64,000 nucleotides of DNA from Macrostomum lignano. Taxonomy: Eukaryota. How positions within the stretch are numbered: position 1 is the stretch's first letter; each line of letters begins with the position of its first letter. The notes under the pieces are model-generated. The model was not told the origin of the DNA. It made no database searches and saw only the letters and a list, made by a program, of their open reading frames with translations. Both the position numbers and the translations under genes were made by a program. The DNA lies in contig NIVC01002528.1 of assembly GCA_002269645.1 (NCBI GenBank), positions 100,168 to 164,167 of the forward strand, given 5' to 3'. Positions 4,984 to 61,700 of the stretch are shown in pieces.

Positions 4984-11130
<6,147 letters not shown>

Positions 11131-11513
11131 GGCTTGAGCTTAGCTATATCGATTTCTAGATGATACTTTGCAGGTTTGAAGAATCCTGATTTTCGCTGGG
11201 CCTGATCCGAGATTAAATATATAGACTTCAATTTCAATGCAAATGATACATCTGCAGGGTTGGTTGCGTTGGTCAACCTGTCATCATGCAGAATTATACG
11301 GCTTTATTTAATGGCTTGCAGCTTAGATTTACTTCCAATTAAGTATAAGTTTCCCTTGATCAAGAATCAGAGATCGTCACGGATATCACGTCAAATACTG
11401 TAAAGTGCATGATGGGCATTAATAGTTCCAAATTCGATCTCATTAAATGCTACAGTACTTAACTTACTCTTGCCTACTATAAATCAATATTGCTTAGTCT
11501 ATATCCTTCTATA

Positions 11514-12931
11514 CCTTTTTACGTTCTATTTGATAAAAACTGCAACCAATTTGGCCACGGCTCAGCCTGACCATAGACATAGAATTTTCCATAGACAGCC
11601 ACCGCCAGCGGCAACCAATCTGGTAAAAACTGCGAGCTATTTTGCCAGCTTGAAGATAGCAGCTGCTCTGATGGCGAATCGTGGGCCGTACCAAAAGATA
11701 AGTCAGCTGGATCGAGAGCGAATCGTGAGAGCGTACAGGAGTGGCGACGACTGGGGAGAGCTTGGCAGAATGATGGGGATGAAGAAACCGACAGTGAGGA
11801 ACATCGTGACCACGTATGAACGAACTGGTAGAGTTGGCACTCTGCCAAAAGGAGGAGTGAAGAGGATGGCGCTGACGGAGGCTATGGTGGACACCATTGT
11901 TCAATTCGTCGAAGGTCAACCTACTGCGACGCTGCAACAAATGAGAGAGCACCTGCTGCACCAACACAATGACGTTGCCAACGTGAGTCTGACCACTATC
12001 AGTCGTGCTCTGGATGGTCGCCTCATCACCCTGAAGTTACTGCGCCAGGTACCTGTGAACTGGAACATGCCTGTTACAAAGGAGGCGCGAAGGATGCACG
12101 TTGAATGGATGCTGGACGAGGGAAGCCAGGTGAACACCATCTTCATGGACGAGTTTGGGGTGAACATCTGGACGGCGAGGACTCAAGGCCGCTCAGCGAA
12201 GGGGCTCCCAGCTGTGACTGTCGTCAGCGGACAGCGTGGGCAGAATCTCACCATCTGCCTGGCCATCTCGCAACTCGGCCTGATTCACAGCACTCTCGTC
12301 GAAGGAGGCTTTAAGAACGAGCACTTCATGGAATTCCTCTCTGAGATCGATGTTCTGATGGAAGAGGAGTTTGTGCTACTGTCCGATGGGGCTCGCACTC
12401 ACCTAGGTGTCCCTGGGATGTCTGAAGGTCATGCTCACCGATTCCTGCCTCCATACTCGCCGTTCATCAACCCGGCGGAGTACGCAGGCTCAGCGCTGAA
12501 GGCCAAGCTGAAAACGCAATTGCAATCACCTGCCATTCAGCTCGAGGTGGCAGATACTGGACTGGCTGCTGCAGCAGGTGCGACACTGCATCAGCACAGG
12601 ATGCGCATTCTGAAGAGAGAAGTGCAGCAAGCACTGAACTGCATCACGCCTCTCAAGTGCCTGCGCTGGATCAACCATTCCCAGACGTACTTCAATCGGT
12701 GCTTGAATGCTGAGGACATAATGTTCTGACTTCGTGCATGTATTGTTAACATTCTTTATCGTTATTGTTATGCTATTGAGCTGCTATCTTCAAGCTGGCA
12801 AAATAGCTCGCAGTTTTTACCAAATTGGTTGCCGCTATAGCGGTGGCTGTCTATGGAAAATTCTATGTCTATGGTCAGGCTGAGCCGTGGCCAAATTGGT
12901 TGCAGTTTTTATCAAATAGAACGTAAAAAGG
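11514..12931 (+). mobile_element. Full-length IS630/Tc1/mariner-superfamily DNA transposon with long TIRs (11514..11664 and 12779..12931)
   Basis: Near-perfect inverted repeats of about 150 bp starting CCTTTTTACGTTCTATTTG and flanking a single transposase ORF; left flank TA, right flank AA. Confidence 0.93.
11671..12729 (+). CDS. Tc1/IS630-like DDE transposase, 352 aa, intact, DD30E
   Basis: N-terminal HTH-like region; IFMDE, LSDG, LPPYSPFINPAE catalytic motifs. ATG 11671 lies just inside the left TIR; the upstream TTG-initiated extension reads through the TIR and is not real. Confidence 0.92.
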   Translation: MANRGPYQKISQLDRERIVRAYRSGDDWGELGRMMGMKKPTVRNIVTTYERTGRVGTLPKGGVKRMALTEAMVDTIVQFVEGQPTATLQQMREHLLHQHNDVANVSLTTISRALDGRLITLKLLRQVPVNWNMPVTKEARRMHVEWMLDEGSQVNTIFMDEFGVNIWTARTQGRSAKGLPAVTVVSGQRGQNLTICLAISQLGLIHSTLVEGGFKNEHFMEFLSEIDVLMEEEFVLLSDGARTHLGVPGMSEGHAHRFLPPYSPFINPAEYAGSALKAKLKTQLQSPAIQLEVADTGLAAAAGATLHQHRMRILKREVQQALNCITPLKCLRWINHSQTYFNRCLNAEDIMF

Positions 12932-13169
12932 AATATTATTAATCTGGTAATAGGAACACCATAAGCATACGTGCGCTTCCAAAGTTCCAATCAACAGTCT
13001 ATATGGCTGTCAAAGCTCGTATGCACAGTAAATTATGTTTGGAAAAGCAAAATCATTTTTCACCCCCAGACTGATTTGATCGAAGACTCATTCGATGTGT
13101 CTGTGAAATTAAGCTTGTCAGTCAAGATGCAGTGTAGTAGACTAGAATAGTAGAGATGTCTATTACACA

Positions 13170-14189
13170 TGCGCCGCACTTATTTTAGCACCGCAGCTAG
13201 AACTCATTTTGGCGCCAGACACTCATTTTGGCGCCACAGACACTTTTTCTGGCCGCAAACACTCATTTTGGCGCCGTACTCATTTTAGCGCCACAGACAC
13301 TCATTTTAGCGCCACAGACACTCATTTTAGCGCCACAGACACTCATTTTAGCGCCGCAGACAGACACTCATTTTGGCGCCACAGACACTTTTTCTGGCCG
13401 CAAACACTCATTTTGGCGCCGTACTCATTTTAGCGCCACAGACACTCATTTTAGCGCCGCAGACAAACACTAATTTTGGCGCCGCAGTCATTTTGGCGCC
13501 GCAGTCATTTTGGCGCCGCAGACAGACACTCATTTTGGCGCCGCAGACAGACACACATTTTGGCGCCGCAGACAGACACTCATTTTGGCGCCGCAGTCAT
13601 TATAGCGCCGCAGACAGACACTCATTTTGGCGCCGCAGACAGACACTCATTTTGGCGCCGCAGTCATTTTGGCGCCGCAGACAGACACACATTTTGGCGC
13701 CGCAGTCATTTTGGCGCCGCAGTCATTTTGGCACCGCAGACAGACACTCATTTTGGCGCCGCAGACAGACACTCATTTTGGCGCCGCAGTCATTTTGGCG
13801 CCGCAGACAGACGCACATTTTGGCGCCGCAGACAGACACTCATTTTGGCGCCGCAGTCATTATAGCGCCGCAGACAGACACTCATTTTGGCGCCGCAGAC
13901 AGACACTCATTTTGGCGCCGCAGACAGACACTCATTTTGGCGCCGCAGACAGACACTCATTTTGGCGCCGCAGTCATTTTAGCGCCGCAGACAGACACTC
14001 ATTTTGGCGCCACATATATACTCATTATGGCGCCGAGAGCGCTATATATTTTGGGGCCCTGAAGCATAAATTATTGATTTCCATAACGAGTCACAAGGGT
14101 AGGGTGAGGGGGACAAAGCATTTGCATGTCCCCCCATAGCTTTTACTGGGATAGGACACCCCCATGTCCCCCTAGTGGCTTTGCCACTG
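13170..14189 (-). mobile_element. MITE family A copy with an expanded internal 21-25-bp minisatellite (TTTTGGCGCCGCAGACAGACACTCA)
   Basis: 14040..14189 is the reverse complement of the family A left end (compare 34926..35040); array at about 13203..14010; the other end is missing. Confidence 0.8.
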
Positions 14190-28860: not shown

Positions 28861-29029
28861 TTAATAACTTTAATTTATGATTCTTTACGCTACTATAGTG
28901 CATGCAGAAATTGCTGAATAGTTCTATTGTCTGTTGTGTTTATAAGTTTTTTTGCTTGAAGTTATTTAATTAGTTTCTATTCATATAGTGTCTTATTATT
29001 ATAAACTTGATCCGTAAAATTTTGCTCTT

Positions 29030-29578
29030 GGGCCACTGCCAGCCTCCCAGAGTGTCAGTTGCTGGGCCAGCCTCCCAGATCCTCAGCTGCTTGGCCAGCC
29101 TCCCAGAGTGTCAGTTGCTTGGCCAGCCTCCCAGACCCTCAGTTGCTGGGCCGGCCTCCCAGATTGTCAGTTGCTTGGCCAGCCTCCCAGATCCTCAGTT
29201 GCTGGGCCAGCCTCCCAGATCCTCAGCTGCTTGGCCAGCCTTCCAGAGTGTCAGTTGCTTGGCCAGCCTCCCAGACCCTCAGTTGCTGGGCCGGCCTCCC
29301 AGATTGTCAGTTGCTTGGCCAGCCTCCCAGAGTGTCAGTAGCTGGGCCAGCCTCCCAGAGTGTCAGTTGCTGGGCCAGCCTCCCAGAGTGTCAGTTGCTG
29401 GGCCAGCCTCCCAGAGTGTCAGTTGTTGGGCCAGCCTCCCAGAGTGTCAGTTGCTGAGCCAGCCTCCCAGAGTGTCAGTTGCTGGGCCAGCCTCCCAGAG
29501 TGTCAGTTGCTGGGCCAGCCTCCCAGATCCTCAGTTGCTGGGCCAGCCTCCCAGATCCTCAGTTGCTGGGCCAGCCAA
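29030..29578. repeat. 28-bp GC-rich minisatellite GGCCAGCCTCCCAGAGTGTCAGTTGCTG downstream of the Rab6 stop
   Basis: Direct observation. Confidence 0.95.
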
Positions 29579-29796
29579 TTTTTTAGTTTTCTTGTGCTGT
29601 CTTTATTCAGGTACATTTTGTAACCTCAATCTGAATGCAAATCGCACAGGCTAACATCGAAAATTTTGCAAACGAAACTAGAATTTAGACTTAAAGACTT
29701 CGCAATAATTAGCGCTGCTTTTTGAAAATCCCAGTTATCAATGATATTAGAAGAAATTTGATTGACTCAATGCACTTTAATGTTGTTCACAAAATG

Positions 29797-34365: not shown

Positions 34366-37300
34366 ATGAAGCGCCTCTGCAGTTTACTGCTGCTCTGCTC
34401 TCTGGTTGCTCTGGTTGCAGCGAGGGCGGCGGCACCTCCGCCAACGCATCGTCCTCTGTGCGAGCCCGGAGTGACGCCGCCGCCAAACCGGTTCAACTCG
34501 ACCGAACGGTTGCGGATGTTGCGCAATCGCATGGCGCAAGAGACTGCTCCAGGCATCGATTGGTACCTGGTCACCGGACTCAATAGAATGCTATCGGCGC
34601 CTCAGCCAAGCGAACAGTACCGGTCATGGCTAAGCGGATTCACGGGATCTAGTGGTAATCCTTATTTCAAAATGACTTGTTATTGTATAGATTGATTGAT
34701 ACTCTGATCACTGACAGGGCTATTGTTCTTTTAGCTGACATTCCATGAGAACTTTTTTTAACATCGACACATGTTAAAAATTCTGTTAATCTCAGTCACT
34801 TGGAAGAAATGAACGAGTATATACTGCACGCAAATGGGAGTGTTAGCCGACAACACGTTTATTATCAACAAAACTATTTTCCGACAACACGAGCAGAACG
34901 TTCAATCCAAAGTGAGAAGCGTCACCAGGCGCGTCGCCACTGGGAGGACAGGAGGGACATGTCCCCCCCCCCCCAGTAAAAGCTATGGGGGGACATGCCA
35001 ATGCTTTGTCTCCCCTCCCACCTTGTGACCCATTGTGGTAATAAATAATTTTTCTTCAGTGTGCCAAAATATAGCGCCTTCGGTGCCAAAATGAGTGCCT
35101 GCGACGCTAAAGTAAGCGCTGACAGCACGATTATCAAAACAATTGGAAATGTAGGACCTTCGTCATGTACATGTTGAATTCTTGGTTTTGTCCCCCTCAC
35201 CATAAAATCCATGGCGACGCCTCTGACCGTTACAGAGCCTGTCTCTTGACCTGGGTGCGAACCAGGGACTTCTTAAGCTAGCATCTTAAGCTAGACACGC
35301 AAGGCCTTACCTTGCGTGCCCGGTGCTGCTAGCTTGGTGCGAAGGTATTGGCGGAGCCGCTAGTGTCAGCCAGCAGACATGTTTGACGAAGTGCAAAAAA
35401 GCCTAAAAAGCATCTTACACATACGGAGCATACATGCGTAGGAATAAAACAATACCCACACATCCATCCGACGTTTAGAGTATTAGTACGAGTACAAGAT
35501 CATTTTTAGTATAGTAGAAGATTTAGTATATTTAGATTGGTTAAGACGACAAAAAGTAGGTAAAAAAAAAAATTTAGGCATAAGATTTTTCACGTCACCA
35601 ATTTTTCATTGACTATCGACGTAGTCGGACACGTCTGTAACGTTGGCATAACTCGTAGTAATAAATCAGTTTTTTCAATTTTATTTCAGGCCAGATACTG
35701 GTCAGTCAAACCGAAGCCTATCTATTCACGGACACTCGCTACACCGTGCAAGCCGATCAAGAGTTGGACTGCGATTGGAAATTCTTCGATTCATTGTCAA
35801 CAGATCGATGGGTGAACGCCTACAACGGCACCAGTGTTTCGCTAGCCGTCGATGCAAGAGAGATTCGAGCCAGAGATTACGAGAATCTGTTGAATAATGC
35901 CTCTGTTAAGCTGGTACCGCTGCAGAAAAATCTTGTCGATGAAATCTGGGTGGAGAATCGTCCTGAGCCCATCAAGCAGGACATTTATCCGCTGGCAATG
36001 ACTTATACTGGAAAGACCTGGCAGGCCAAGGTCGCTCAGATGCGCTCTGAGGCCCTGGGAATCGGATCAGACAAAGCCGACTTCCTGGTTGTGACAGGCC
36101 TGGACGAAACTGCCTACCTGTTGAATCTGAGAGCCACTGTGGTGGCAAATTTCCCCTACTTCCCAAGCCTCGTGCTGCTTTCCGCTGACAAGGCGCTCGT
36201 TTTCGTTGATGAACCGGCCTATTTCTATGGCAACGAGTCACTGCGCAAGCATCTCAGTCTGAATAGCGACGGAACATGCGAGGCTGGCGCGCAGCTTTGC
36301 ATCGAACTGAAGCGCATGACGGAGCTGAGCCCGGTAGCCAACCAGCTGCTCACAAACACCAGCAGAGTTTGGCTTGACGCCGCCAGCTGCTCCTACGCCG
36401 TCCAATCCGCGCTGTCAAAAGCTGCCATAATTTCTAAATCCACTCCAGTCCAGAAAGCGAAGGCCGTGAAGAATTCGGCAGAACAAGTGGCCTTCAAGGA
36501 CTGCTCGTTGATGGACTCGGCTGCTCTGGTAGCTTTTCTTAATCAGATGCGGCATCGCATGGCGAACAATGTGGCAATGACGGAGCTGTCGGCCAGTGCG
36601 CTTCTAGCCAACTACCGAGCCAAGATACCGGAGTTCCGCGGCCTCAGCTTCACTACTATTGCCGCCTCCGGCCCAAACGCCGCCGTTATCCACTACAGAC
36701 CGACTGAGAGCACCGATCGGTCCATAACCAAGTCCGAGGCTTTTTTATTGGATTCTGGCGGCCACTACCTCGGCTGCACTACCGACGTCACCAGGACATT
36801 GTACTACGGAGATCAACCGGTTGACGAGGTTCGCGACGCATACACTCGAGTACTCATGGGCGTTATCGACTTGTTCAATCTGACGTGGCCCAGCCACCTG
36901 ACCACGCGTCACGTGGACCCGTTTGCGCGTCACAACCTCTGGTCAGTGCTGAAAGACTACGCCCACGGCACCGGACATGGCATCGGGCTGTTCCTAGGGG
37001 TGCACGAAGGACCCAACGGAATCGGGCGGGACTATCCGCTTGAGGAGGGCAATTTTCAGTCAATTGAGCCGGGCTTTTATCAACGCGAGGCGGCCGGAGT
37101 TCTTGGCTTCGGAATTCGGCTTGAGACAATTTGCGGAGTCAAACTCACCGGCAAGTTTCTACGGTTTGAGCCGGTTACCTGGGTGCCGTTCGAGAGGAAG
37201 CTGATCAAACAGGAGATGCTGAGCCCGGATCAGCTGCGCTGGCTTAACTGGTACCACGGCGAGTGCCGGAAGCGTCTACCAGAAGCGCTGCAGAAAATTG

Positions 37301-37449
37301 GCGAACAGGCAGCAGTTGAAGAATGGCTGAACGCGGCTACCGAGCCAATTGTTGTCGAGGTGAAGTCGGCTCAAGGTGTGTACGCCAACGTCGTGACGAC
37401 ATTCATGCCCGTTCTGGTGGCAGTATTTCTGGTATCTAAATCGGTTTAA
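34366..37449 (+). CDS. X-Pro aminopeptidase (aminopeptidase P, M24B), XPNPEP2-like, with signal peptide and GPI-type hydrophobic tail, 682 aa
   Basis: join(34366..34654, 35690..37449) = 2049 nt. Motifs: SWLSGFTGSSG, FTDTRY, LLDSGG, TTDVTRT, HGTGHGIG..VHEGP, SIEPG, GIRLE, WLNWYH. N-terminus MKRLCSLLLLCSLVALVAA; C-terminus TFMPVLVAVFLVSKSV. Confidence 0.93.
34926..35225 (+). mobile_element. Complete MITE family A copy (300 bp), hAT-like, in the aminopeptidase intron
   Basis: TIR CAGGCGCGTCGCCA / TGGCGACGCCTCTG; degenerate 8-bp TSD AGCGTCAC / ACCGTTAC (6 of 8). Confidence 0.85.
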
Positions 37450-39335: not shown

Positions 39336-41078
39336 TTCCGTTAGAAGATGTTTAGGGCAGGCGATCGAGTGATTCTCGCGCTATAAAAACACGGTTGGTT
39401 AGCAAAGAAAAATTCCGTAATTAAAAATTGGGGCCCAAAGAGCAGCAAAGCAAAAAAGCAAAAGTACATGTGCCTTAAATAATCAGACCGGGGTCGCCTC
39501 ACAGTCCAGGGGCCGTTTCGCCGTCACGGGAGCTGTCTTCAGCGGAGTTCGTCGATGTCGTCCGTGTCGGTGTTAGAGCAAGTTATTCAAGGGCGGAGGC
39601 TTATGGTTGTTTGTCGAGGATACCCGCTTTGGCGATTGGGGAAAGTCTCTTGAGATTTGCCCGGGTGGATCAGGTTGACCAGAGGGCCAAGTTGATCAAA
39701 GCGGGGTCAAATAAAAAGGCTCATGCATGGACATGTATTTATAAGCCCGAGAGTCACGTGAAATGTCACGTGACTTCCACTGCTAGGCAACCCAGTGATA
39801 ATTGCCGTGCTGTGATTGGCTAAAAGGGAATCCTGGGTGCTGCAAAGAGGTGGCTGAGTCATCGAGGCCAGTTTACGGGTAATGAGGGATCTGAAAATAG
39901 GTGCCACTAAATCATAACTGATAAATATTTATGTCACGTTTGAATAGTGTTAGAAGATCCGATCCCGTCGCGATTGATCGATCGAGAACAAAATTTAATT
40001 ATGGAGTCAAATTTGTGCAATATGTGCATGTGAAAAAGCAATGCCTGCAGCTGAGTTTGAACATACCGGCAATGAAAATCGTCAATAAAATTGTAATTTT
40101 ATTCTAGAATTTTCTGCTGGTTTGAATGGAAGGGTGATCAGACATTGGGTAGACATGCACATGCATGAACAGCATGAGCAAGTTAAGGACAGTCTGCTAC
40201 CCAAGGACAACTGAAGTAGTAGGACGCAACACTCGCGTATCGTGTAATTTTTTTTGGAGGCCTGGTCTTCACATATATGTAATTTTCGACTAGTTGCACG
40301 TAGAAAGCTAATTCTTTCGGTGTTAGGTCCAGAATTTTGTTTTTCGTTAAAATGTCAGTAATAAAATAGTAGACTACATGTATAAGCAGCGTACAGTTAA
40401 GTAGAGTGAAAACAACGCAATTTCGTGCAATTTAAAATTTACAATTCCTGTCACAATTCCTGGTCAATTGCGAAAACGATTTTTTAGTTTGTAAACTAAT
40501 AATCTCATTAAGCAAGTGTAAAATAAAACAGTTTATGTATTTTAGAAAATTTCACTGTCAAATGCCATTGGTTTATTATTACGAGTATCAAAAAAGTGAA
40601 TAAATTTTTGGCTTGCGTTAGAGTGAGACAAAACGGAAAACAAAAAAACTGATGAAAAACAATAGCAAACTCGACAAAGCATCTGCGACGAAGCAGAACC
40701 TGAAGGACCTGGATCTGGATCTATAATAAGTATAAAAAAATTGCTTTGTAAACATGGTCTCTTGTTGACATTTGTGATATAAAGAAACATTGTTTGTCAG
40801 CAAAAAAGAAAACAAGAAAACCAGTATTTCACAAATCCATATAAAGAAATGCATATTGTTATTGGCCATTAAAAGAACGTGGTATAATTATTTTAATTAG
40901 TAGGTGAAGTCAGCTTATCAAGTTTAGTAAGAAATGAAAACCTGAATGGTTTATTACAACACACACAGTCCTGTGCTCTATTTGTAGCGGTCGAATCCTA
41001 GGCTTATGTACGTAGAACTTTATACGGCTTACGGGCCTCCAAAAAAATTTCCACGAAAGCTGAGTGTCGCGTCCTATA

Positions 41079-42388
41079 CGAGGGTCACTCAGAAAGTTCT
41101 TAGCCTGAACACGAAAACAGCAACAAATGAACTAAAAAACGACTACAAGTGCTCAAAATACTCTCCACCGGCATTGATACAGGCTTGCATCCTGTGAAAC
41201 CAGCTGTCAAAGCACTGCCGCCAATCCTCATCCCGGAGCTCTTCGATGATGTTTTTGAACTCATTCACAGCTTCTTCCGGTGAAGAAAAGACCTGGCCCT
41301 TCAGAATCTCCTTGCACTTCGGAAACAGAAAAAAGTCGCACAGTGCCAGGTCTGGACTATACGCAGGGTGAGTCATCAGCTGGACCCCACAGTCAGCCAG
41401 AAACTCAAGAGTTTGAGCCGCCGTGTGCTCGCTGGCGTTGTCGTGGTGCAGAAGCACCCCGCGCATTCCGCACCTAGGGCGCCTCTGGCTCACAGCAGAA
41501 AAGACTTTGGGCAGGCAAACCGTTGTGTACCAGTCAGCGGTGACTGTCTGGCGATCTTTAAGTGAAACGGAAGCCACATGCCCAGTGCGCATGAAGAAAC
41601 AGGCCACCATCTGCTTGCCGACACTCCGGCTGCGTCGAAACTTGGTGGGGCTGTCCTCGTCTCCAAAGGTCCACATGGCTGACTGGCGCTTGCTTTCGGG
41701 GTCGTATTGATAAATCCAGGTCTCATCGCCCGTGAGGATGTCCCAGATACGCCGGCTGGTCCCAGATTCGAATTTCTGCAGCATGAATCGGCACCAAGCC
41801 ACCCTGGTGTCCTTCTGCACGTCCGACAGCTGATGGGGGATCCACCGGGAAGCCAGCTTCCGCACTCCAAGGTGTTCGTGCAGAATGGCGTGCACACTAC
41901 CCGATCCAATACCGATCTCCTGCTGGATCTGCTGGTAGGTCACTCGCCGGTCAGCGGCAATCATGCTGGACACAGCGCAGATATTTTCTGGAGTCACTGC
42001 GTCACAGGGTCTCCCGGATCGATGTTCATCTTCGAGGCTTTCTCGACCTCGGCGAAACTCAGCGAACCAGTTTTTGACGGTTGCGTATGAAGGACATACA
42101 TGGGTAAAAACGTTCTGTAAAGTTTGATACGATTCGGTCGGCGACTTGCCTTGCTTGAAGTGCAAGTAAATCATTGCTCTGAAGTCGCGATTTTCCAGCT
42201 TCATTGTTAAATTGAAGAACTCAGGGGGTGAACTGATTTTAACTCGCTGCAGTGGACTCAAAAGTGGCTGCTTCTGTTTGAAATTTTTGTTGCAATACTT
42301 TTAAAAGTTGGTCTTTACCATAGACAAATTTCATGCTTCTACGTCTCGTGGATCCTACTCAGGCTAAATACTTTCTGAGTGACCCTCG
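41079..42388 (-). mobile_element. Full-length mariner element (1310 bp) with 30-bp TIRs and TA TSD
   Basis: TA|CGAGGGTCACTCAGAAAGTTCTTAGCCTGA ... TCAGGCTAAATACTTTCTGAGTGACCCTCG|TA, two mismatches between TIRs. Confidence 0.96.
41143..42204 (-). CDS. Mariner transposase, DD34D, 353 aa, open frame
   Basis: WIPHQL, TGDETW, HHDNA, HPAYSPDLALCD (34 residues between D2 and D3), GEYFE; ATG at 42204 (MKLENRDF). Confidence 0.95.
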   Translation of the reverse strand: MKLENRDFRAMIYLHFKQGKSPTESYQTLQNVFTHVCPSYATVKNWFAEFRRGRESLEDEHRSGRPCDAVTPENICAVSSMIAADRRVTYQQIQQEIGIGSGSVHAILHEHLGVRKLASRWIPHQLSDVQKDTRVAWCRFMLQKFESGTSRRIWDILTGDETWIYQYDPESKRQSAMWTFGDEDSPTKFRRSRSVGKQMVACFFMRTGHVASVSLKDRQTVTADWYTTVCLPKVFSAVSQRRPRCGMRGVLLHHDNASEHTAAQTLEFLADCGVQLMTHPAYSPDLALCDFFLFPKCKEILKGQVFSSPEEAVNEFKNIIEELRDEDWRQCFDSWFHRMQACINAGGEYFEHL

Positions 42389-43399
42389 TATATAACGTAA
42401 CTTCAGTTGTCCTTGCTGCTACCTAGCTATTACATCAATTGTAATTGCATAAAATTTTCTATAGATGCTTTTATTGTGCCTAAAATACGGAAGAAACTAT
42501 AAGATTTATAATAAATGTTTTAATGCGTTTTCCTAGCAAAATCTTGCAAACTTTGGTCTTTTCTAGGATGTTACATATCTAAAGATGAAATTGCAAAAGC
42601 TCGGACTCTCAGATCATCGAAATCCCTACTTTTGAGAATTAGTGAAATTTTGTTCATGAAGTTTCGAGGTAGGAAAATTTCGAATTCTAAAAAGCTGCCG
42701 ACATCATGTTAAATAGACATTCACGTTCTTTGATTTTAAAATTCCGTAAATTACACTACACTATAACAATAATTCACCCGTAAAACATTGAATCCAGCAG
42801 TCAATTTCTTACAGCAAGATTGATTTTTATACTGAACAGAAATTTACTGCTTGTAAAGTAAAAAACGCGACAAAAATTATATGACGCGATAAAGCAAAGG
42901 AGAAACCGGTTAAATTAAATCGCAAAGCACTGCTGCACAAGATTCCAAAGAACACGACTCAATTTACTACATGACCATTCTGCCGTTTAATCTGAAAGAT
43001 TCATAAGGTATGGAAGTAAATTCGGAATAGTCATCAGACTAAAAATGCATGCTTGTATAATTTTACATTATATATATAAACAGATTTTTTGGTCTTGTAA
43101 CTTTTTATGGCATTGGATTTATAAACATTGTATGAAACTTTGTGCACGTGTAGATAACGTGTAGATCAGTTTTTAATATTAAATTTCATTTTTAAATAGA
43201 AAATATTTTGCATGATATACTATTTCTATTATTTAAAAATTCAATATTAGACATAAAGTTATATATCGTACATTAGTTATAGCCACTGTATCATATAAAC
43301 TACGATAACCACTCGCTATATAAATAGCTAGCTAAACATATTACGCGTATATATAAAGTAAATTTACGGGCTCGTATTAACCTAACAAACTATTTTAGC

Positions 43400-51149
<7,750 letters not shown>

Positions 51150-53849: not shown

Positions 53850-54240
53850 ATCGTGTCCAAAGTGTATACTAATCGTGTCCAAAGTGTACACTCATCGTGT
53901 CCAAAGTGTACACTAATCGTGTCCAAAGTGTACTACACTCATCGTGTCCAAAGTGTACTACACTCATCGTGTCCAAAGTGTACTACACTCATCGTATCCA
54001 AAGTGTACACTCATCGTATCCAAAGTGTACACTCATCGTATCCAAAGTGTACACTCATCGTATCCAAAGTGTACACTCATCGTGTCCAAAGTGTACTACA
54101 CTCATCGTGTCCAAAGTGTACACTCATCGTGTCCAAAGTGTACACTAATCGTGTCCAAAGTGTACACTAATCGTGTCTAAAGTGTACACTCATCGTGTCC
54201 AAAGTGTACACTAATCATATCTAAAGTGTACACTCATCGT
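53850..54240. repeat. 22-bp minisatellite ACTCATCGTGTCCAAAGTGTAC (25-bp variants) overlapping the GPCR stop codon
   Basis: Direct observation. Confidence 0.95.
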
Positions 54241-55642
54241 CCGATGCAGAACGATCTCCGATACAGTTAACTCCGCTATTAGTTACTAAGGCAGCGGTGA
54301 CTATCGTGCCAGAGACCTGCGGTTGCGCAATCGGCGTTGTCGATTGGTGGCGCAGCAGCAACTGCAGCGGCTGCAGTTCACCGTTGCGAGCCTGCACCGC
54401 CTCGTGCTCGGAGCGCAAGCTATTCGCTTGAGCGCCGCACATGCTTGCCTGTTCCAGAGTCAGTCGGGTCGTAACGCCGCGACCACCGCAGCGCAGCACC
54501 CTGCCTCGGAACGTTCTAGACGACACGAAATAGGCCAGGAAATTTGTGGCATTATTAGCAAACATCAGCGTCTTGAGGACGTCCAGAGTGACTCGGGTTG
54601 ACTCAGAACGGGTTAGCCAGCCGCTAACGCTGAGCAGTTGACCCAGGGAGGCGGGCAGGGTGGTACAAATGTGAATAACAGTCAGCACCGCCAATAGACG
54701 CATGATACTCTCAGGTTTCCGTCCGCGAGTTAGGTTAGACGATTCTGCAGGCTCAGTAGAAACTTCCAGTGCAGCCTGCACCACATCCTGCTGTTTCTTC
54801 TGCCTTTTCTGCTCCTCATCCTGGTTATTGGCCGCCATTCTCCGTTTCCGCATAGTGGCATAAATGTACACATTGGAGACTAGCAGAACAGTGTACGGTA
54901 CTACCAAGAATGTAATGACGTCAAGCTTAACAAACCAACGACCAAATTCTCGATCGTAGTCGCACTTTGTTAGCAACAATCGATAAGATTCGTTCGGTAG
55001 CTCGTTCAGCTCCGAGATGCTCACTGTGGTTGGCTTGCGCCGGAGTTCAGTGCCATTAATCTTGCCGCCAAGTTGGCTGGCAAGAAGCTGCACGCATCGG
55101 GTAGTGAAACGGAAGAAGCCAAGCGGCGCATTCTTCGCCACGATAGCCGCAGATACGACGCCGAACACTGCGGAAAAATTTCTCTTAGTGATCAGCCGGC
55201 TGGCCCGATTGTGATAGGCCACAAGAATGAAGCGCTCAACGCCGATGCCGCAGAGGGCGTAGACGGCCAAGTCGCTGACTGTGGCAACCACGGCCTGGTG
55301 CAGATGGCACAGTACCGGATGCTGATCGCGGATGTCCAACCCGACCGTCTCGGTCAGCCAGTATCTGAGCACGGCCAGCAGCAGCACGGCGCAGTCAACC
55401 AGAGCCAAAAACACCATCAGAAAGCGGGTGGTACCTCGCAGCGATCGGTCAGTGGCCTGCAGGTAGGCCGTGGCCGAATTGCCAGCAACCCCGCCAATTA
55501 TGATTGCAGCTCCGAGCACTCGGAGCGACCATTCGGCGAGGCGGACAGCCAGGCTGCTTGAGTCGGTCGACAATGTGCCAGCATTGCAGACGGGAAGGCT
55601 GCTGATGTTATCGCTGCCTAACTGACTTAGTAAATCAGACAT
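54221..55642 (-). CDS. Intronless rhodopsin-like (class A) peptide-type GPCR, 473 aa
   Basis: Seven hydrophobic segments; GN in TM1 (GVAGNSAT), LALVD in TM2, C at the start of TM3, ERF as DRY equivalent, VPY..L.SN in TM5, TLP in TM6, NNATNFLAY as NPxxY equivalent, SRTFR helix 8. Confidence 0.9.
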   Translation of the reverse strand: MSDLLSQLGSDNISSLPVCNAGTLSTDSSSLAVRLAEWSLRVLGAAIIIGGVAGNSATAYLQATDRSLRGTTRFLMVFLALVDCAVLLLAVLRYWLTETVGLDIRDQHPVLCHLHQAVVATVSDLAVYALCGIGVERFILVAYHNRASRLITKRNFSAVFGVVSAAIVAKNAPLGFFRFTTRCVQLLASQLGGKINGTELRRKPTTVSISELNELPNESYRLLLTKCDYDREFGRWFVKLDVITFLVVPYTVLLVSNVYIYATMRKRRMAANNQDEEQKRQKKQQDVVQAALEVSTEPAESSNLTRGRKPESIMRLLAVLTVIHICTTLPASLGQLLSVSGWLTRSESTRVTLDVLKTLMFANNATNFLAYFVSSRTFRGRVLRCGGRGVTTRLTLEQASMCGAQANSLRSEHEAVQARNGELQPLQLLLRHQSTTPIAQPQVSGTIVTAALVTNSGVNCIGDRSASDDECTL

Positions 55643-58788: not shown

Positions 58789-61700
58789 TCAATGCGACTT
58801 GCGAGGCCGCAGATTTCGATCGCTTCCACCACCGCTGTTGTTTCCATTAATCGTGAGCACTTGCACGCCCAGGTACGAGGCAATCTGACGGCATAGTCTG
58901 GCGGAATATTGAACCACATCTGCTAAGCCGATAATTGCGGCTAAATAGAGGGCGACACCCTCCGACAGGGGCTCGTTAAAGTACTGATTGACAACCAGCA
59001 GGGCGGGGCCGAGGAGGCCAGAGTCCCACACAGCCAGCTCAGTGCGAGTCATGTGAGCAACAATCAGACGTTCGCAAATTTTAACGCTAGCCGCGCCAAA
59101 TGCGGTGATGAATAGGCAGGGCCGGTCAAAAAATAAACTGGGAGATTTGTTGCTAACGGCAGCCGTGATGACAATCAGCATTAGCCACACAACGCCGGGG
59201 AAGATGATGCTGGTATTGGCTACTGTTGACCCGTTTTTACCTGCTCCGCCTTGGCTGATGCAGTAGGCAAGACGGAAGTACAGCGAGCTCGAAGTGGTCA
59301 AGTATATCAGCACCTGGGAGGGTAGGGGAGTGAGTGTTGAGGGGCGGTTGTGGCATCTGACAGCCCCCGAAAGAAGCTCTCATCTTTGGCAGACAGAATC
59401 TGTGAACTTCATCTGACAGAATCTGTGAACTTCATCTGACAGAATCTGTAAACTTTATTTGACAGAATAGAATCTGTGAACTTCATCTGACAGAATCTGT
59501 GAACTTCATCTGACAGAATCTGTGAACTTCATCTGACAGAATCTGTGAACTCCAACTGACAGAATCTGTGAGCTCCATCTGAAAGAATCTGTGAACTTCA
59601 TCTGACAGAATCTGTGAACTCCAACTGACAGAATCTGTGAGCTCCATCTGAAAGAATTTGTGAACTTCATCCGACAGAATCTGTGAGCTCTATCTGACAG
59701 AATATGTGAACTTCATCTGACAGAATCTGTGACCTCCATCTGACAGAATCTGTGAACTGTATCTGACAGAATCTGTGAGCTGTATCTGACAGAATCTGTG
59801 AGCTCCATCTGACAGAATCTGTGAGCTCCAGCTGACAGAATCTGTGAACTCCATCTGACAGAATCTGTGAACTTCATCTGACAGAATCTGTGAACTTCAT
59901 CTGACAGAATCTGTGAGCTCTATCTGACAGAATCTGTAAACTTCATCTGACAGAATCTGTGAACTCCATCGGACAGAATCTGTGAACTTCATCTGACAGA
60001 ATCTTTGAGCTCCATCTGACAGAATCTGTGAACTCCATCGGACAGAATCTGTGAACTTCATCTGACAGAATCTTTGAGCTCCATCTGACAGAATCTGTGA
60101 ACTCCATCGGACAGAATCTGTGAACTTCATCTGACAGAATCTTTGAGCTCCATCTGACAGAATCTGTGAACTGTATCTAACAGAATGTGAGTTCCATGTG
60201 ACAACCAAATTTCACCAAAAAGAATTATCTGTAACGACTTTACCTGAACATGCCGCAACAGGATGCCGCCAGGCAACACGCTGACACCCCACAATCCGTT
60301 CACTCCGCCAAACGCCGTGGCAATAAACACTCCCATACAGCACAATTGCGCTTCCGTGACGTCAAACATGCCAAACATAATCTTGCCAGTAATATAGGCA
60401 ATCCAATGCGCCACAAAGAACAGCGTCATAGACGAAGCGCACTGGACCAGCATCAGCTTAGGCGTATGGCCCAGTCCCGTAGCAACAGACAGGCTCAGCG
60501 TTACTAGCAGAGTATTAGCCGCGTCGCAGCCGTGATCGAATAGTTCGCCAAGCTGATTGGCGGAACCGGTGCGCCTGGCCTGCTTGCCGTCCAATGCGTC
60601 CAGGGTTTGATAGACGAATAGAGCGAAAGCGGCGTAGAGCAGCAGCCAGGCTGGGATGTCCTGCGTGCCAATTGTGCCGTCACGCATAAGTTCTTGACGA
60701 TAATTACACCTTGGAATTTCCTGTCTGGCCCTCATTTCTTCATTAGACCATTACGGTTGATTCTTAGAAAGATTCAGGGCCGATTCTTAGAAATATTCAG
60801 GGCCGATTCTTAAAAAGATTTAGGGCCGATTCTTAGAAAGATTCAGGGCCGATTCTTAGAAAGATTCAGGGCCGATTCTTAGAAAGATTCAGATCTGATT
60901 CTTAGATTCAGGGCCGATTCTTAGAAAGATTCAGGGCCGATTCTTAGAAAGATTCAGATCTGATTCTTAGATTCAGGGCCGATTCTTAGAAAGATTCAGG
61001 GCCGATTCTTAGAAAGTATCAGGTACGATTCTTAGAAAGATTCAGGTTCGATTCTTAGAAAGATTCAGGTTCGATTCTTAGAAAGATTCAGGTCCGATTC
61101 TTAAAAAGATTCAGGTCCGATTCTTAGAAAGATTCAGGTCTGATTCTTAGAAAGATTCAGGTCCGATTCTTAGAAAGATTCAGGTCCGATTCTTAGAAAG
61201 ACTCAGGTTCGATTCTCAAAAATATTCAGGTCCAATTCTTAGAAAGATTCAGGTCCAATTCTTAGAAAGATTCAGGTCCGATTCTTAGAAAGATTCAGGT
61301 CCAATTCTTAGAAAGATTCAGGTCCAATTCTTAGAAAGATTCAGGTCCAATTCTTAGAAAGACAGGGATGATTCTCGGGGAGATTTGGGGCGGATTCTTA
61401 CCAATATTTAAGATGATTCTTGAAAAGATTTAAGAGAAAGTTTAGGAAGATTTTAGGATTGATTCTCAGAAAGATTTACGACCGATTCTTAGACGGACTT
61501 AGAAGCGAGTATTAGGGCAGTTTTACAGCAACTATTAAAAAACAGTAAAAATTGCTGTTTTCCTACCTGTTTAGCATCGGGACTATAGATTAGCAGCAGC
61601 ACTGCGCTACTGGCGTTCATCATCAGGCCGGCGAGTGTCAGAGCGTTAGGAGCAGCGTTCATCGGCACCCAATCGATCAGGGCGCGCCAGAACCGTTGCA

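Follow-up and report, generated by a model that had tools for sequence, protein, structure and literature searches.

A 64,000-nt stretch of the genome of the flatworm Macrostomum lignano (contig NIVC01002528.1, forward-strand positions 100,168 to 164,167; hereafter the window) carries a structurally intact, 1.4 kb DNA transposon of the cut-and-paste type that spans window positions 11512-12933 (TACC...GGAA). We read it as an IS630-Tc1-mariner (ITm) transposon that inserts at TA and encodes one 352-aa transposase, in which a spacing of 30 residues between the second and third catalytic residues (DD30E) is a trait of a whole clade, related to the HvSm/DD34E elements; we put the probability of this reading at about 85%. 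No DNA transposons are more widespread than ITm elements, from which tools such as Sleeping Beauty (SB) and Mos1 derive. It is customary to label ITm families by the D-to-E spacing, and new spacing classes (DD35E to DD41D, DD82E) have been treated as new families.

The transposase gene lies at 11671-12729 on the plus strand and consists of 352 codons and a stop, running from an ATG at 11671 to the stop at 12727-12729 with no stop or frameshift inside (frame check, Pfam, homologues and the NCBIfam IS630 model). Its catalytic residues are D160 (GAC in an FMDE context, 12148-12150, +), D239 (GAT in an LSDG context, 12385-12387, +) and E270 (GAG in an NPAE context, 12478-12480, +), all three invariant in a 31-sequence alignment. 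A first-pass annotation of the sequence had reported an uninterrupted 352-aa open reading frame (ORF) and exactly 30 codons between the GAT and the GAG, and both counts held when repeated from the DNA: the spacer at 12388-12477 (+) is 90 nt long and translates as GARTHLGVPGMSEGHAHRFLPPYSPFINPA. By family comparison and an AlphaFold2 (AF2) model it comprises a GARTH motif, a 10-residue Pro/Gly loop (LGVPGMSEGH), strand beta5 (HRFL) and the segment LPPYSPFINPA. The first and second D are 78 residues apart; in SB, with D153, D244 and E279, this distance is about 90 residues.

Domain searches agree with this assignment. Pfam matched DDE_3 (E=1.3e-14) and the paired-like helix-turn-helix (HTH) models HTH_32, HTH_SB, HTH_28 and PAX, and the same scan of the protein gave no match to Transposase_1, HTH_48 or DDE_1. 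The HTH models fall on an N-terminal bipartite paired-like DNA-binding domain (~aa 10-115, 11698-12015, +) with a GRVGTLPKGG linker and six helices in the AF2 model. Searched against the PDB as a single sequence, the protein found the SB PAI subdomain and Pax6; the family profile found Pax5, Pax6, Pax8, Mos1 (6e-7), SETMAR and the SB100X catalytic domain (3.7e-4). The first-pass annotation had proposed modelling the RNase H fold, and the AF2 model (mean predicted local distance difference test score, pLDDT, 84) bears the fold out, with the Mos1 transpososome as best Foldseek match (1e-11), together with SETMAR and SB. In the model the catalytic residues occupy their canonical places, D160 on strand beta1, D239 at the end of beta4 (after strand 234-238) and E270 at the start of the next helix (268-284). 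The frame also stays open for 67 codons 5' of the ATG through the left end of the element (11470-11670), so that an ORF list gives 419 aa from a TTG at 11470. As the homologues begin at the MA(N/Q)RGPY methionine, this upstream extension is probably meaningless.

The gene lies between long terminal inverted repeats (TIRs). The left arm (~153 nt, 11512-11664, +) begins TACCTTTTTACG and the right arm (~155 nt, 12779-12933, -) finishes ...CGTAAAAAGGAA; the ATG lies 6 nt past the end of the left arm, and the right arm begins 50 nt past the stop. In a repeat search of the window the arms paired at 99% (11510-11605 with 12840-12935) and at 98% (11607-11664 with 12779-12836). Over their whole length (~154 nt) the globally aligned arms are ~97-98% identical, with 3 mismatches and a single 2-nt indel between them, which accords with the near-identity remarked on at first pass; the sole terminal mismatch is at base 2 of the inverted repeat (TACC vs TTCC). 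The 30-nt terminus occurs exactly 2 times in the window, with 0 occurrences expected. The intact ORF and the similarity of the arms suggest that the insertion is fairly recent.

Within each arm are two ~30-nt direct repeats, 90-92 nt apart, with the common core AAAACTGC. In the left TIR the outer repeat (ATTTGATAAAAACTGCAACCAATTTGGCCA, 11528-11557, +; direct-repeat family D3, inverted pairs I3/I4) is followed 90 nt downstream by an inner repeat that is 80% identical to it (11618-11647, +; family D3). In the right TIR the inner repeat lies at 12796-12825 (-; family D2, inverted pair I3) and the outer one at 12888-12917 (-; family D2, inverted pair I4). The core also occurs twice per end in the relatives L001, L004, L005 and L007. 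Two repeats per arm are the inverted repeat/direct repeat (IR/DR) layout found in SB, by analogy with which the repeats are putative transposase-binding sites.

The exact ends were placed with the help of relatives. The three close relatives L004, L005 and L007 end in TATACC...GGTATA, that is TA|TACC...GGTA|TA, and two distant ones on large eukaryotic contigs (L054 and L055) in TA|CACCTTTTGCTG...CAGCAAAAGGTG|TA, that is TA|CACC...GGTG|TA. Since all five carry YACC termini next to a TA duplication, the two bases before CC belong to the element. With the ends so placed by the relatives, the target-site duplication of the window element is a perfect TA (11510-11511 on the left, 12934-12935 on the right). 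The element bounds first annotated (11514-12931) therefore enclosed a genuine element but fell 2 nt short of its end on each side. CC...GG ends at 11514 and 12931, bordered by a TA/AA duplication, are ruled out by the YACC ends of the relatives, L054 and L055 among them; a 4-bp TATA duplication is ruled out by the YACC ends and TA of the same relatives, above all L054 and L055. An RNase H-like DDE triad, a TA duplication and TIRs around a single transposase gene with a bipartite HTH domain are features of ITm transposons, and the identification of an intact ITm element with a DD30E triad stands on this anatomy, the DDE_3 match and the invariant catalytic residues.

A protein search returned 63 homologues, most of them 344-369 aa long, with a best identity of 69% and E values down to 2.7e-161. 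Among them are a second M. lignano protein (P0015, 45% identity) and one from the coral Porites harrisoni (P0038, 35%). A profile-based repeat of this search gained only four fish proteins and two others. Searching 1.84 billion cluster representatives with a profile yielded 1,325 clusters (50% identity) at E<=1e-30, and some clusters contain many near-identical members (P0046, n=463 sequences; P0033, n=132). Given the DDE_3 score, the E values of the homologues and the two occurrences of the terminus against none expected, chance is excluded.

The 30-residue spacing is widely shared among these relatives. In the 31-sequence alignment nearly all members have 30 residues from D to E, 34 being confined to the three most distant ones (P0060-62). 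Among 208 relatives DD30E is the commonest class (70), with DD31E (20), DD32E (13) and DD33E (20) together accounting for 53, DD34E for 41, DD27-29E for 7 and DD35-40E for 11; the other 26 are fragments or, in the alignment, lack a catalytic residue of the triad. The spacer of DD30E members follows the pattern D[NG]AR[AP]H-xN[VP]Pxxxxx[H]xxxx-LP[PR]YSPFLNxxE and that of DD34E relatives DNVxFH-KxxxVKxxLxxxxxxxxF-LPPYSPFLNPIE. By these patterns the DD30E spacer is a different sequence, not a trimmed DD34E spacer, and the counts above mark the 30-residue spacing as characteristic of a large clade of related elements from animals and metagenomes and not as a private deletion.

The second DD30E family member in M. 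lignano, P0015, is encoded by an element at ~2741-4417 of contig NIVC01003397.1 (L003). Its TIRs are 85 nt long (95%), with the CCTTTT terminus also seen in the window element; its internal repeat, GTGAAATTTATTTAGTCC, differs and is present three times. The element sits within the bounds of a CAPS-like gene (C2_CAPS/PH/MUN) that runs on the other strand.

For the position of the clade within ITm, DDE domains of SB, FP, Pp, TR, IC, TRT, IT, Sailor and two mosquito DD34E elements were taken from Data S2 of the Sailor paper. The mariner reference for the tree was the mariner ORF of the window itself. In a neighbour-joining (NJ) tree of the DDE domain, SB, FP, Pp, TR, IC, IT, TRT and the two mosquito elements, which we take to be Gambol, cluster apart (69% bootstrap), with the window protein on the other side together with IS630-like proteins. 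A DDE-domain phylogeny, as suggested at first pass, thus sets the Tc1-type references apart, but its deep placements are weakly supported. When full-length proteins were placed in an NJ tree with archaeal IS630-like proteins as the root, all 101 sequences with a spacing of 27-33 residues fell, together with seven of 34-38, into a clade of 108, outside which lay HvSm, the fish DD35E proteins and 34 DD34E neighbours.

Profile scores separate the two groups. On a hidden Markov model (HMM) of the short-spacer clade the window protein scores 464 bits, HvSm 254, Gizmo 65, TRT 26, Sailor 20 and SB 16.5; on an HMM of the DD34E neighbours the HvSm protein of Hydra scores 396 bits and the window protein 289. 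On the NCBIfam IS630 model NF033545, P0015 and P0037, both of the short-spacer clade, reach 97 and 100.2 bits and the DD34E neighbours 125-168. Taken together, these comparisons indicate that the short-spacer clade is a relative of HvSm/DD34E that lies outside Tc1 proper, mariner and pogo. GIZMO1_EI of Entamoeba invadens, a sequence in Additional file 5 of Dupeyron et al. (2020), reaches 65-90 bits with the HvSm-like and short-spacer HMMs, and short spacers may occur in a protist relative too.

HvSm is a minor DD34E family of Hydra vulgaris and Schmidtea mediterranea, known from four sequences and with more members expected (Dupeyron et al. 2020, PMC7325037). Compared through two full-length examples translated from Additional file 5 of that paper, HvSm, which includes Mariner-6_SM of Repbase, is the closest described relative among those considered: over ~280 aa, identity of the window protein is 28% with Mariner-6_SM (E 1e-33) and 27% with HvSm of Hydra (E 1e-31). 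The references for Tc1, presumed Gambol, TRT, Sailor and mariner are far more distant. Both groups have a paired-like HTH with a ...KGG... linker, the motifs DE.G.N/S..R..GR...G, DN..xH and LPPYSPFLNP.E, a protein of ~340-380 aa, a TA duplication, TIRs with repeated internal motifs and a flatworm among their hosts. They differ in the spacer, which in Hydra and Mariner-6_SM has 34 residues from D to E and includes an amphipathic helix segment, against 30 in the window element. Their TIRs are also unrelated (TACAGGG... and TTCAATTTTGACA... in HvSm, TACCTTTTTACG... in the window element). The HvSm protein of Hydra belongs to the DD34E neighbour cluster and is 45% identical to P0146.

Similar mixtures of likeness and difference mark the other candidates. 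The fish DD35E proteins (from Esox, Acanthopagrus, Neoarius and Labeo) share the LPPYSPFLNPIE signature and the architecture at 23-29% identity, but they have a 35-residue spacing with the helix segment and group with the DD34E neighbours, not with the short-spacer clade. These relatives (P0339, P0341, P0343 and P0344, of Acanthopagrus, Esox, Neoarius and Labeo) carry DNVAFHHSQAITAWFEVHP..LFLPPYSPFLNPIE; they are annotated as uncharacterised, one of them as 'Insertion element IS630 uncharacterized 39 kDa protein'. By their spacing and host range, they probably belong to the Hiker/DD35E family, reportedly described by Shi and colleagues in 2023.

The match of the window protein to the prokaryotic IS630 model spans both the HTH and the DDE parts, and IS630 elements also target TA. 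However, their spacing is 35-36 residues, the window protein stays under the curated 100-bit cut-off of the model (92.4 bits, E 3e-26) and its host is an animal. No close member emerged when the genomes of 185,579 prokaryotic species were scanned by pattern; the only matches were short local ones to IS630-like elements in metagenome-assembled genomes (MAGs) of Nitrosopumilaceae, whose proteins were used here only as an outgroup. Several of these ammonia-oxidising archaeal MAGs (L008-L051, for example CBDCOI010000001.1, OZ242365.1 and OZ241884.1) carry nine to fifteen or more IS630-like copies each. The archaeal element is DD36E by count, and its motif LPPYSPFLNPAE is the C-terminal signature of the animal elements.

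With Tc1 and SB the window element shares the fold and chemistry (Foldseek match to 5CR4, 2e-6), TA targets, a paired-like PAI+RED domain and long ends of IR/DR type that carry two repeats in each arm. Its protein, however, lacks the Tc1 signature motifs WSDE[ST]KF, QQDNDPKH and WPxQSPDLNPIE, and its spacing is 30 and not DD34E. It differs from mariner (DD34D) in its invariant third residue E and in the absence of a Transposase_1 or HTH_48 match, and from Sailor (DD82E) in spacing (30 against ~82 residues), Sailor scoring just 20 bits on the short-spacer HMM.

The alternative that survives best is that the window element is a mere new member of a family already named, be it a 'Mariner/Tc1' consensus of Repbase or Dfam, a broadly drawn HvSm, or Hiker. 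In a library of 8.3 million papers 'DD30E' occurs in no transposon paper and DD28E to DD33E are absent as family names, Repbase, Dfam and Hiker sequences lying outside this comparison; what comes nearest is a partial IS630/Tc1 fragment, listed as DD31E in a table on a Wolbachia phage. A literature search for M. lignano transposons gave nothing specific. To this extent no described family has a 30-residue spacing, and the short-spacer clade is apparently unnamed. Its proteins are nevertheless already deposited publicly, labelled 'hypothetical protein' or 'Tc1-like transposase DDE domain', the latter being the UniRef label of P0015. We consider prior deposition or naming of the clade less likely than not, but by no means far-fetched, given that Repbase holds an element of the sister group, Mariner-6_SM, and given the scope of the comparison just described. 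The small base of HvSm, to which additions are expected (PMC7325037), also speaks for prior naming. Against it stand the lack of such family names in the literature searched, the identity of only 27-28% to HvSm, a family itself defined as DD34E, and the reciprocal split of the two groups by the HMMs (464 vs 254 bits and 396 vs 289 bits).

The structural basis of the short spacer bears on whether the enzyme works. AF2 predictions of the window protein and of the DD34E relative P0061 were made with essentially the same alignment rows. In P0061, strand beta4 (239-243) is followed by helices at 247-250 and 252-260 and by beta5 at 264-267, with pLDDT of ~95 in this region. In the window protein, beta4 (234-238) is followed by a three-residue turn, a loop at 245-254 and beta5 at 255-258, with pLDDT of ~81-92. 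The short-spacer loop has a conserved Pro and a combined Pro and Gly fraction of 0.14, against 0.06 in DD34E. These models suggest that the amphipathic beta4-beta5 helix of the DD34E relatives is replaced by a shorter proline-containing loop, which would account for the short spacing.

One may ask whether the window element, for all its intact appearance, is dead or domesticated, its short core inactive and its ORF kept by chance or co-opted. A helix between beta4 and beta5 is normal in the RNase H-like fold and its loss might harm catalysis, and the mobility of the window element is presumed. Yet TIRs and a TA duplication are kept, unlike in a domesticated gene, and hundreds of diverged lineages retain the triad, the nearby motifs and full-length ORFs with the short spacing, among them clusters with many near-identical members (463 in P0046, 132 in P0033). 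Such intact, diverged lineages and near-identical clusters indicate that the short-spacer enzyme has been propagating, and the large clusters argue that it is functional. We therefore regard a dead or domesticated copy as distinctly improbable.

If the window transposase is functional, it would likely act by standard ITm cut-and-paste transposition. By analogy with SB, the paired-like bipartite HTH domain would bind the outer and inner ~30-nt repeats of both ~154-nt ends. The RNase H-like domain, with D160, D239 and E270, would excise the element, and the DDE domain would then insert the excised copy at a TA, which is duplicated in the process.

The first-pass annotation had offered two explanations for the spacing, an uncharacterised ITm lineage or a single copy with an in-frame 12-bp deletion. 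The former is upheld and the latter fails. A private deletion in a DD34E or DD35E element could appeal to the nearest described relatives, as HvSm and Mariner-6_SM are DD34E and the fish relatives DD35E. But alignment around the second D and the E, in 31 and then 208 sequences, shows 30 residues to be the commonest spacing (70 of the 208), also in proteins from other hosts that are 33-69% identical and including some only 33-45% identical, and in place of a shortened helix the spacer has a different, conserved sequence with a Pro (xNVPxxxxxH) that recurs across the clade. A private deletion is thus refuted for practical purposes, and we give it very little credence. Even less can be said for a pogo-type element: many pogo/Tigger groups are typically DD30D (PMC7325037, PMC7386202) and so resemble the window element in the distance from the second to the third catalytic residue, but pogo/Tigger has D as third residue, DDE_1 and a CENP-B-type DNA-binding domain, whereas the window protein has an invariant E, DDE_3 in place of DDE_1 and a paired-like domain instead of CENP-B/HTH_Tnp_Tc5, and its nearest relatives are HvSm and IS630-like proteins.

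Several observations weigh against reading the window element as an ITm transposon with a clade-wide DD30E spacing. The spacing is labile inside the short-spacer clade, ranging over 27-33 residues with seven members at 34-38, and the 108-member clade has only 41% NJ bootstrap. Deep nodes of the DDE-only tree have too little support to position the clade with respect to Sailor and IS630. The helix loss is read from AlphaFold models with a loop pLDDT of ~81. An exact-protein look-up returned no record, the nearest database protein being only 69% identical. Finally, the second M. lignano element (L003) is flanked as AA|TACC...GGTC|AA, not by TA.

The lability of the spacing also touches its use in classification. 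The first-pass annotation took ITm families to be defined by spacing; this holds as a conventional label, but the practice is contested, a 2024 paper having argued that DDxE spacing is unreliable for classification (PMC11544213). The drift of 27-38 residues within the short-spacer clade agrees with that paper's case.

The window contains a second apparently intact ITm element, which is of mariner type (41070-42397, -). It has a 372-aa ORF (41143-42261, -) with the DD34D motif HHDNASEH...YSPDLALCD and Pfam matches to HTH_48 and Transposase_1, and 39-nt TIRs (41070-41108 and 42359-42397) that are 90% complementary. Tandem-repeat or satellite tracts that give spurious repetitive ORFs lie at 13150-14140, 5224-7529, 7789-8433, 8654-9316, 29007-29654 and 47511-48281; an array of CTCATTTTGGCGCC type begins ~220 nt past the DD30E transposon and one of GAGTCTGTG type lies at 5.2-7.5 kb. 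Among host genes, a 567-aa ORF at 35746-37449 (+) is a large exon that is 100% identical to the M. lignano Xaa-Pro aminopeptidase A0A1I8GG13 and so marks the window as DNA of this flatworm. The ORFs at 54221-55642 (-) and 60127-60735 (-) encode a rhodopsin-family G protein-coupled receptor (7tm_1) and a fragment of a CDP-alcohol phosphatidyltransferase, respectively.

A more far-reaching combination of claims can be formulated, namely that the DD30E elements are a monophyletic, widespread, propagating and never-named ITm family, sister to HvSm/DD34E, with a D-to-E spacing shorter than in all other DDE-type ITm transposases, a core that works without the beta4-beta5 helix and, in M. lignano, an autonomous, active copy. 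We consider this combination less likely than not. A large DD30E clade would push the known spacing range of DDE-type members downwards and would give the four-sequence HvSm family a sister group. The predicted loss of an element of the catalytic core while the transposons spread would be a natural test of what the fold needs, and the drift of the spacing from 27 to 38 residues within one clade bears on how sound a classifier it is. The finding is a modest addition to transposon classification and does not overturn current understanding. For M. lignano itself, an intact native element might be explored for transgenesis; if the copy is autonomous and active, it would be a compact native candidate vector, of 1.4 kb and with a transposase of 352 aa, for this regeneration model.

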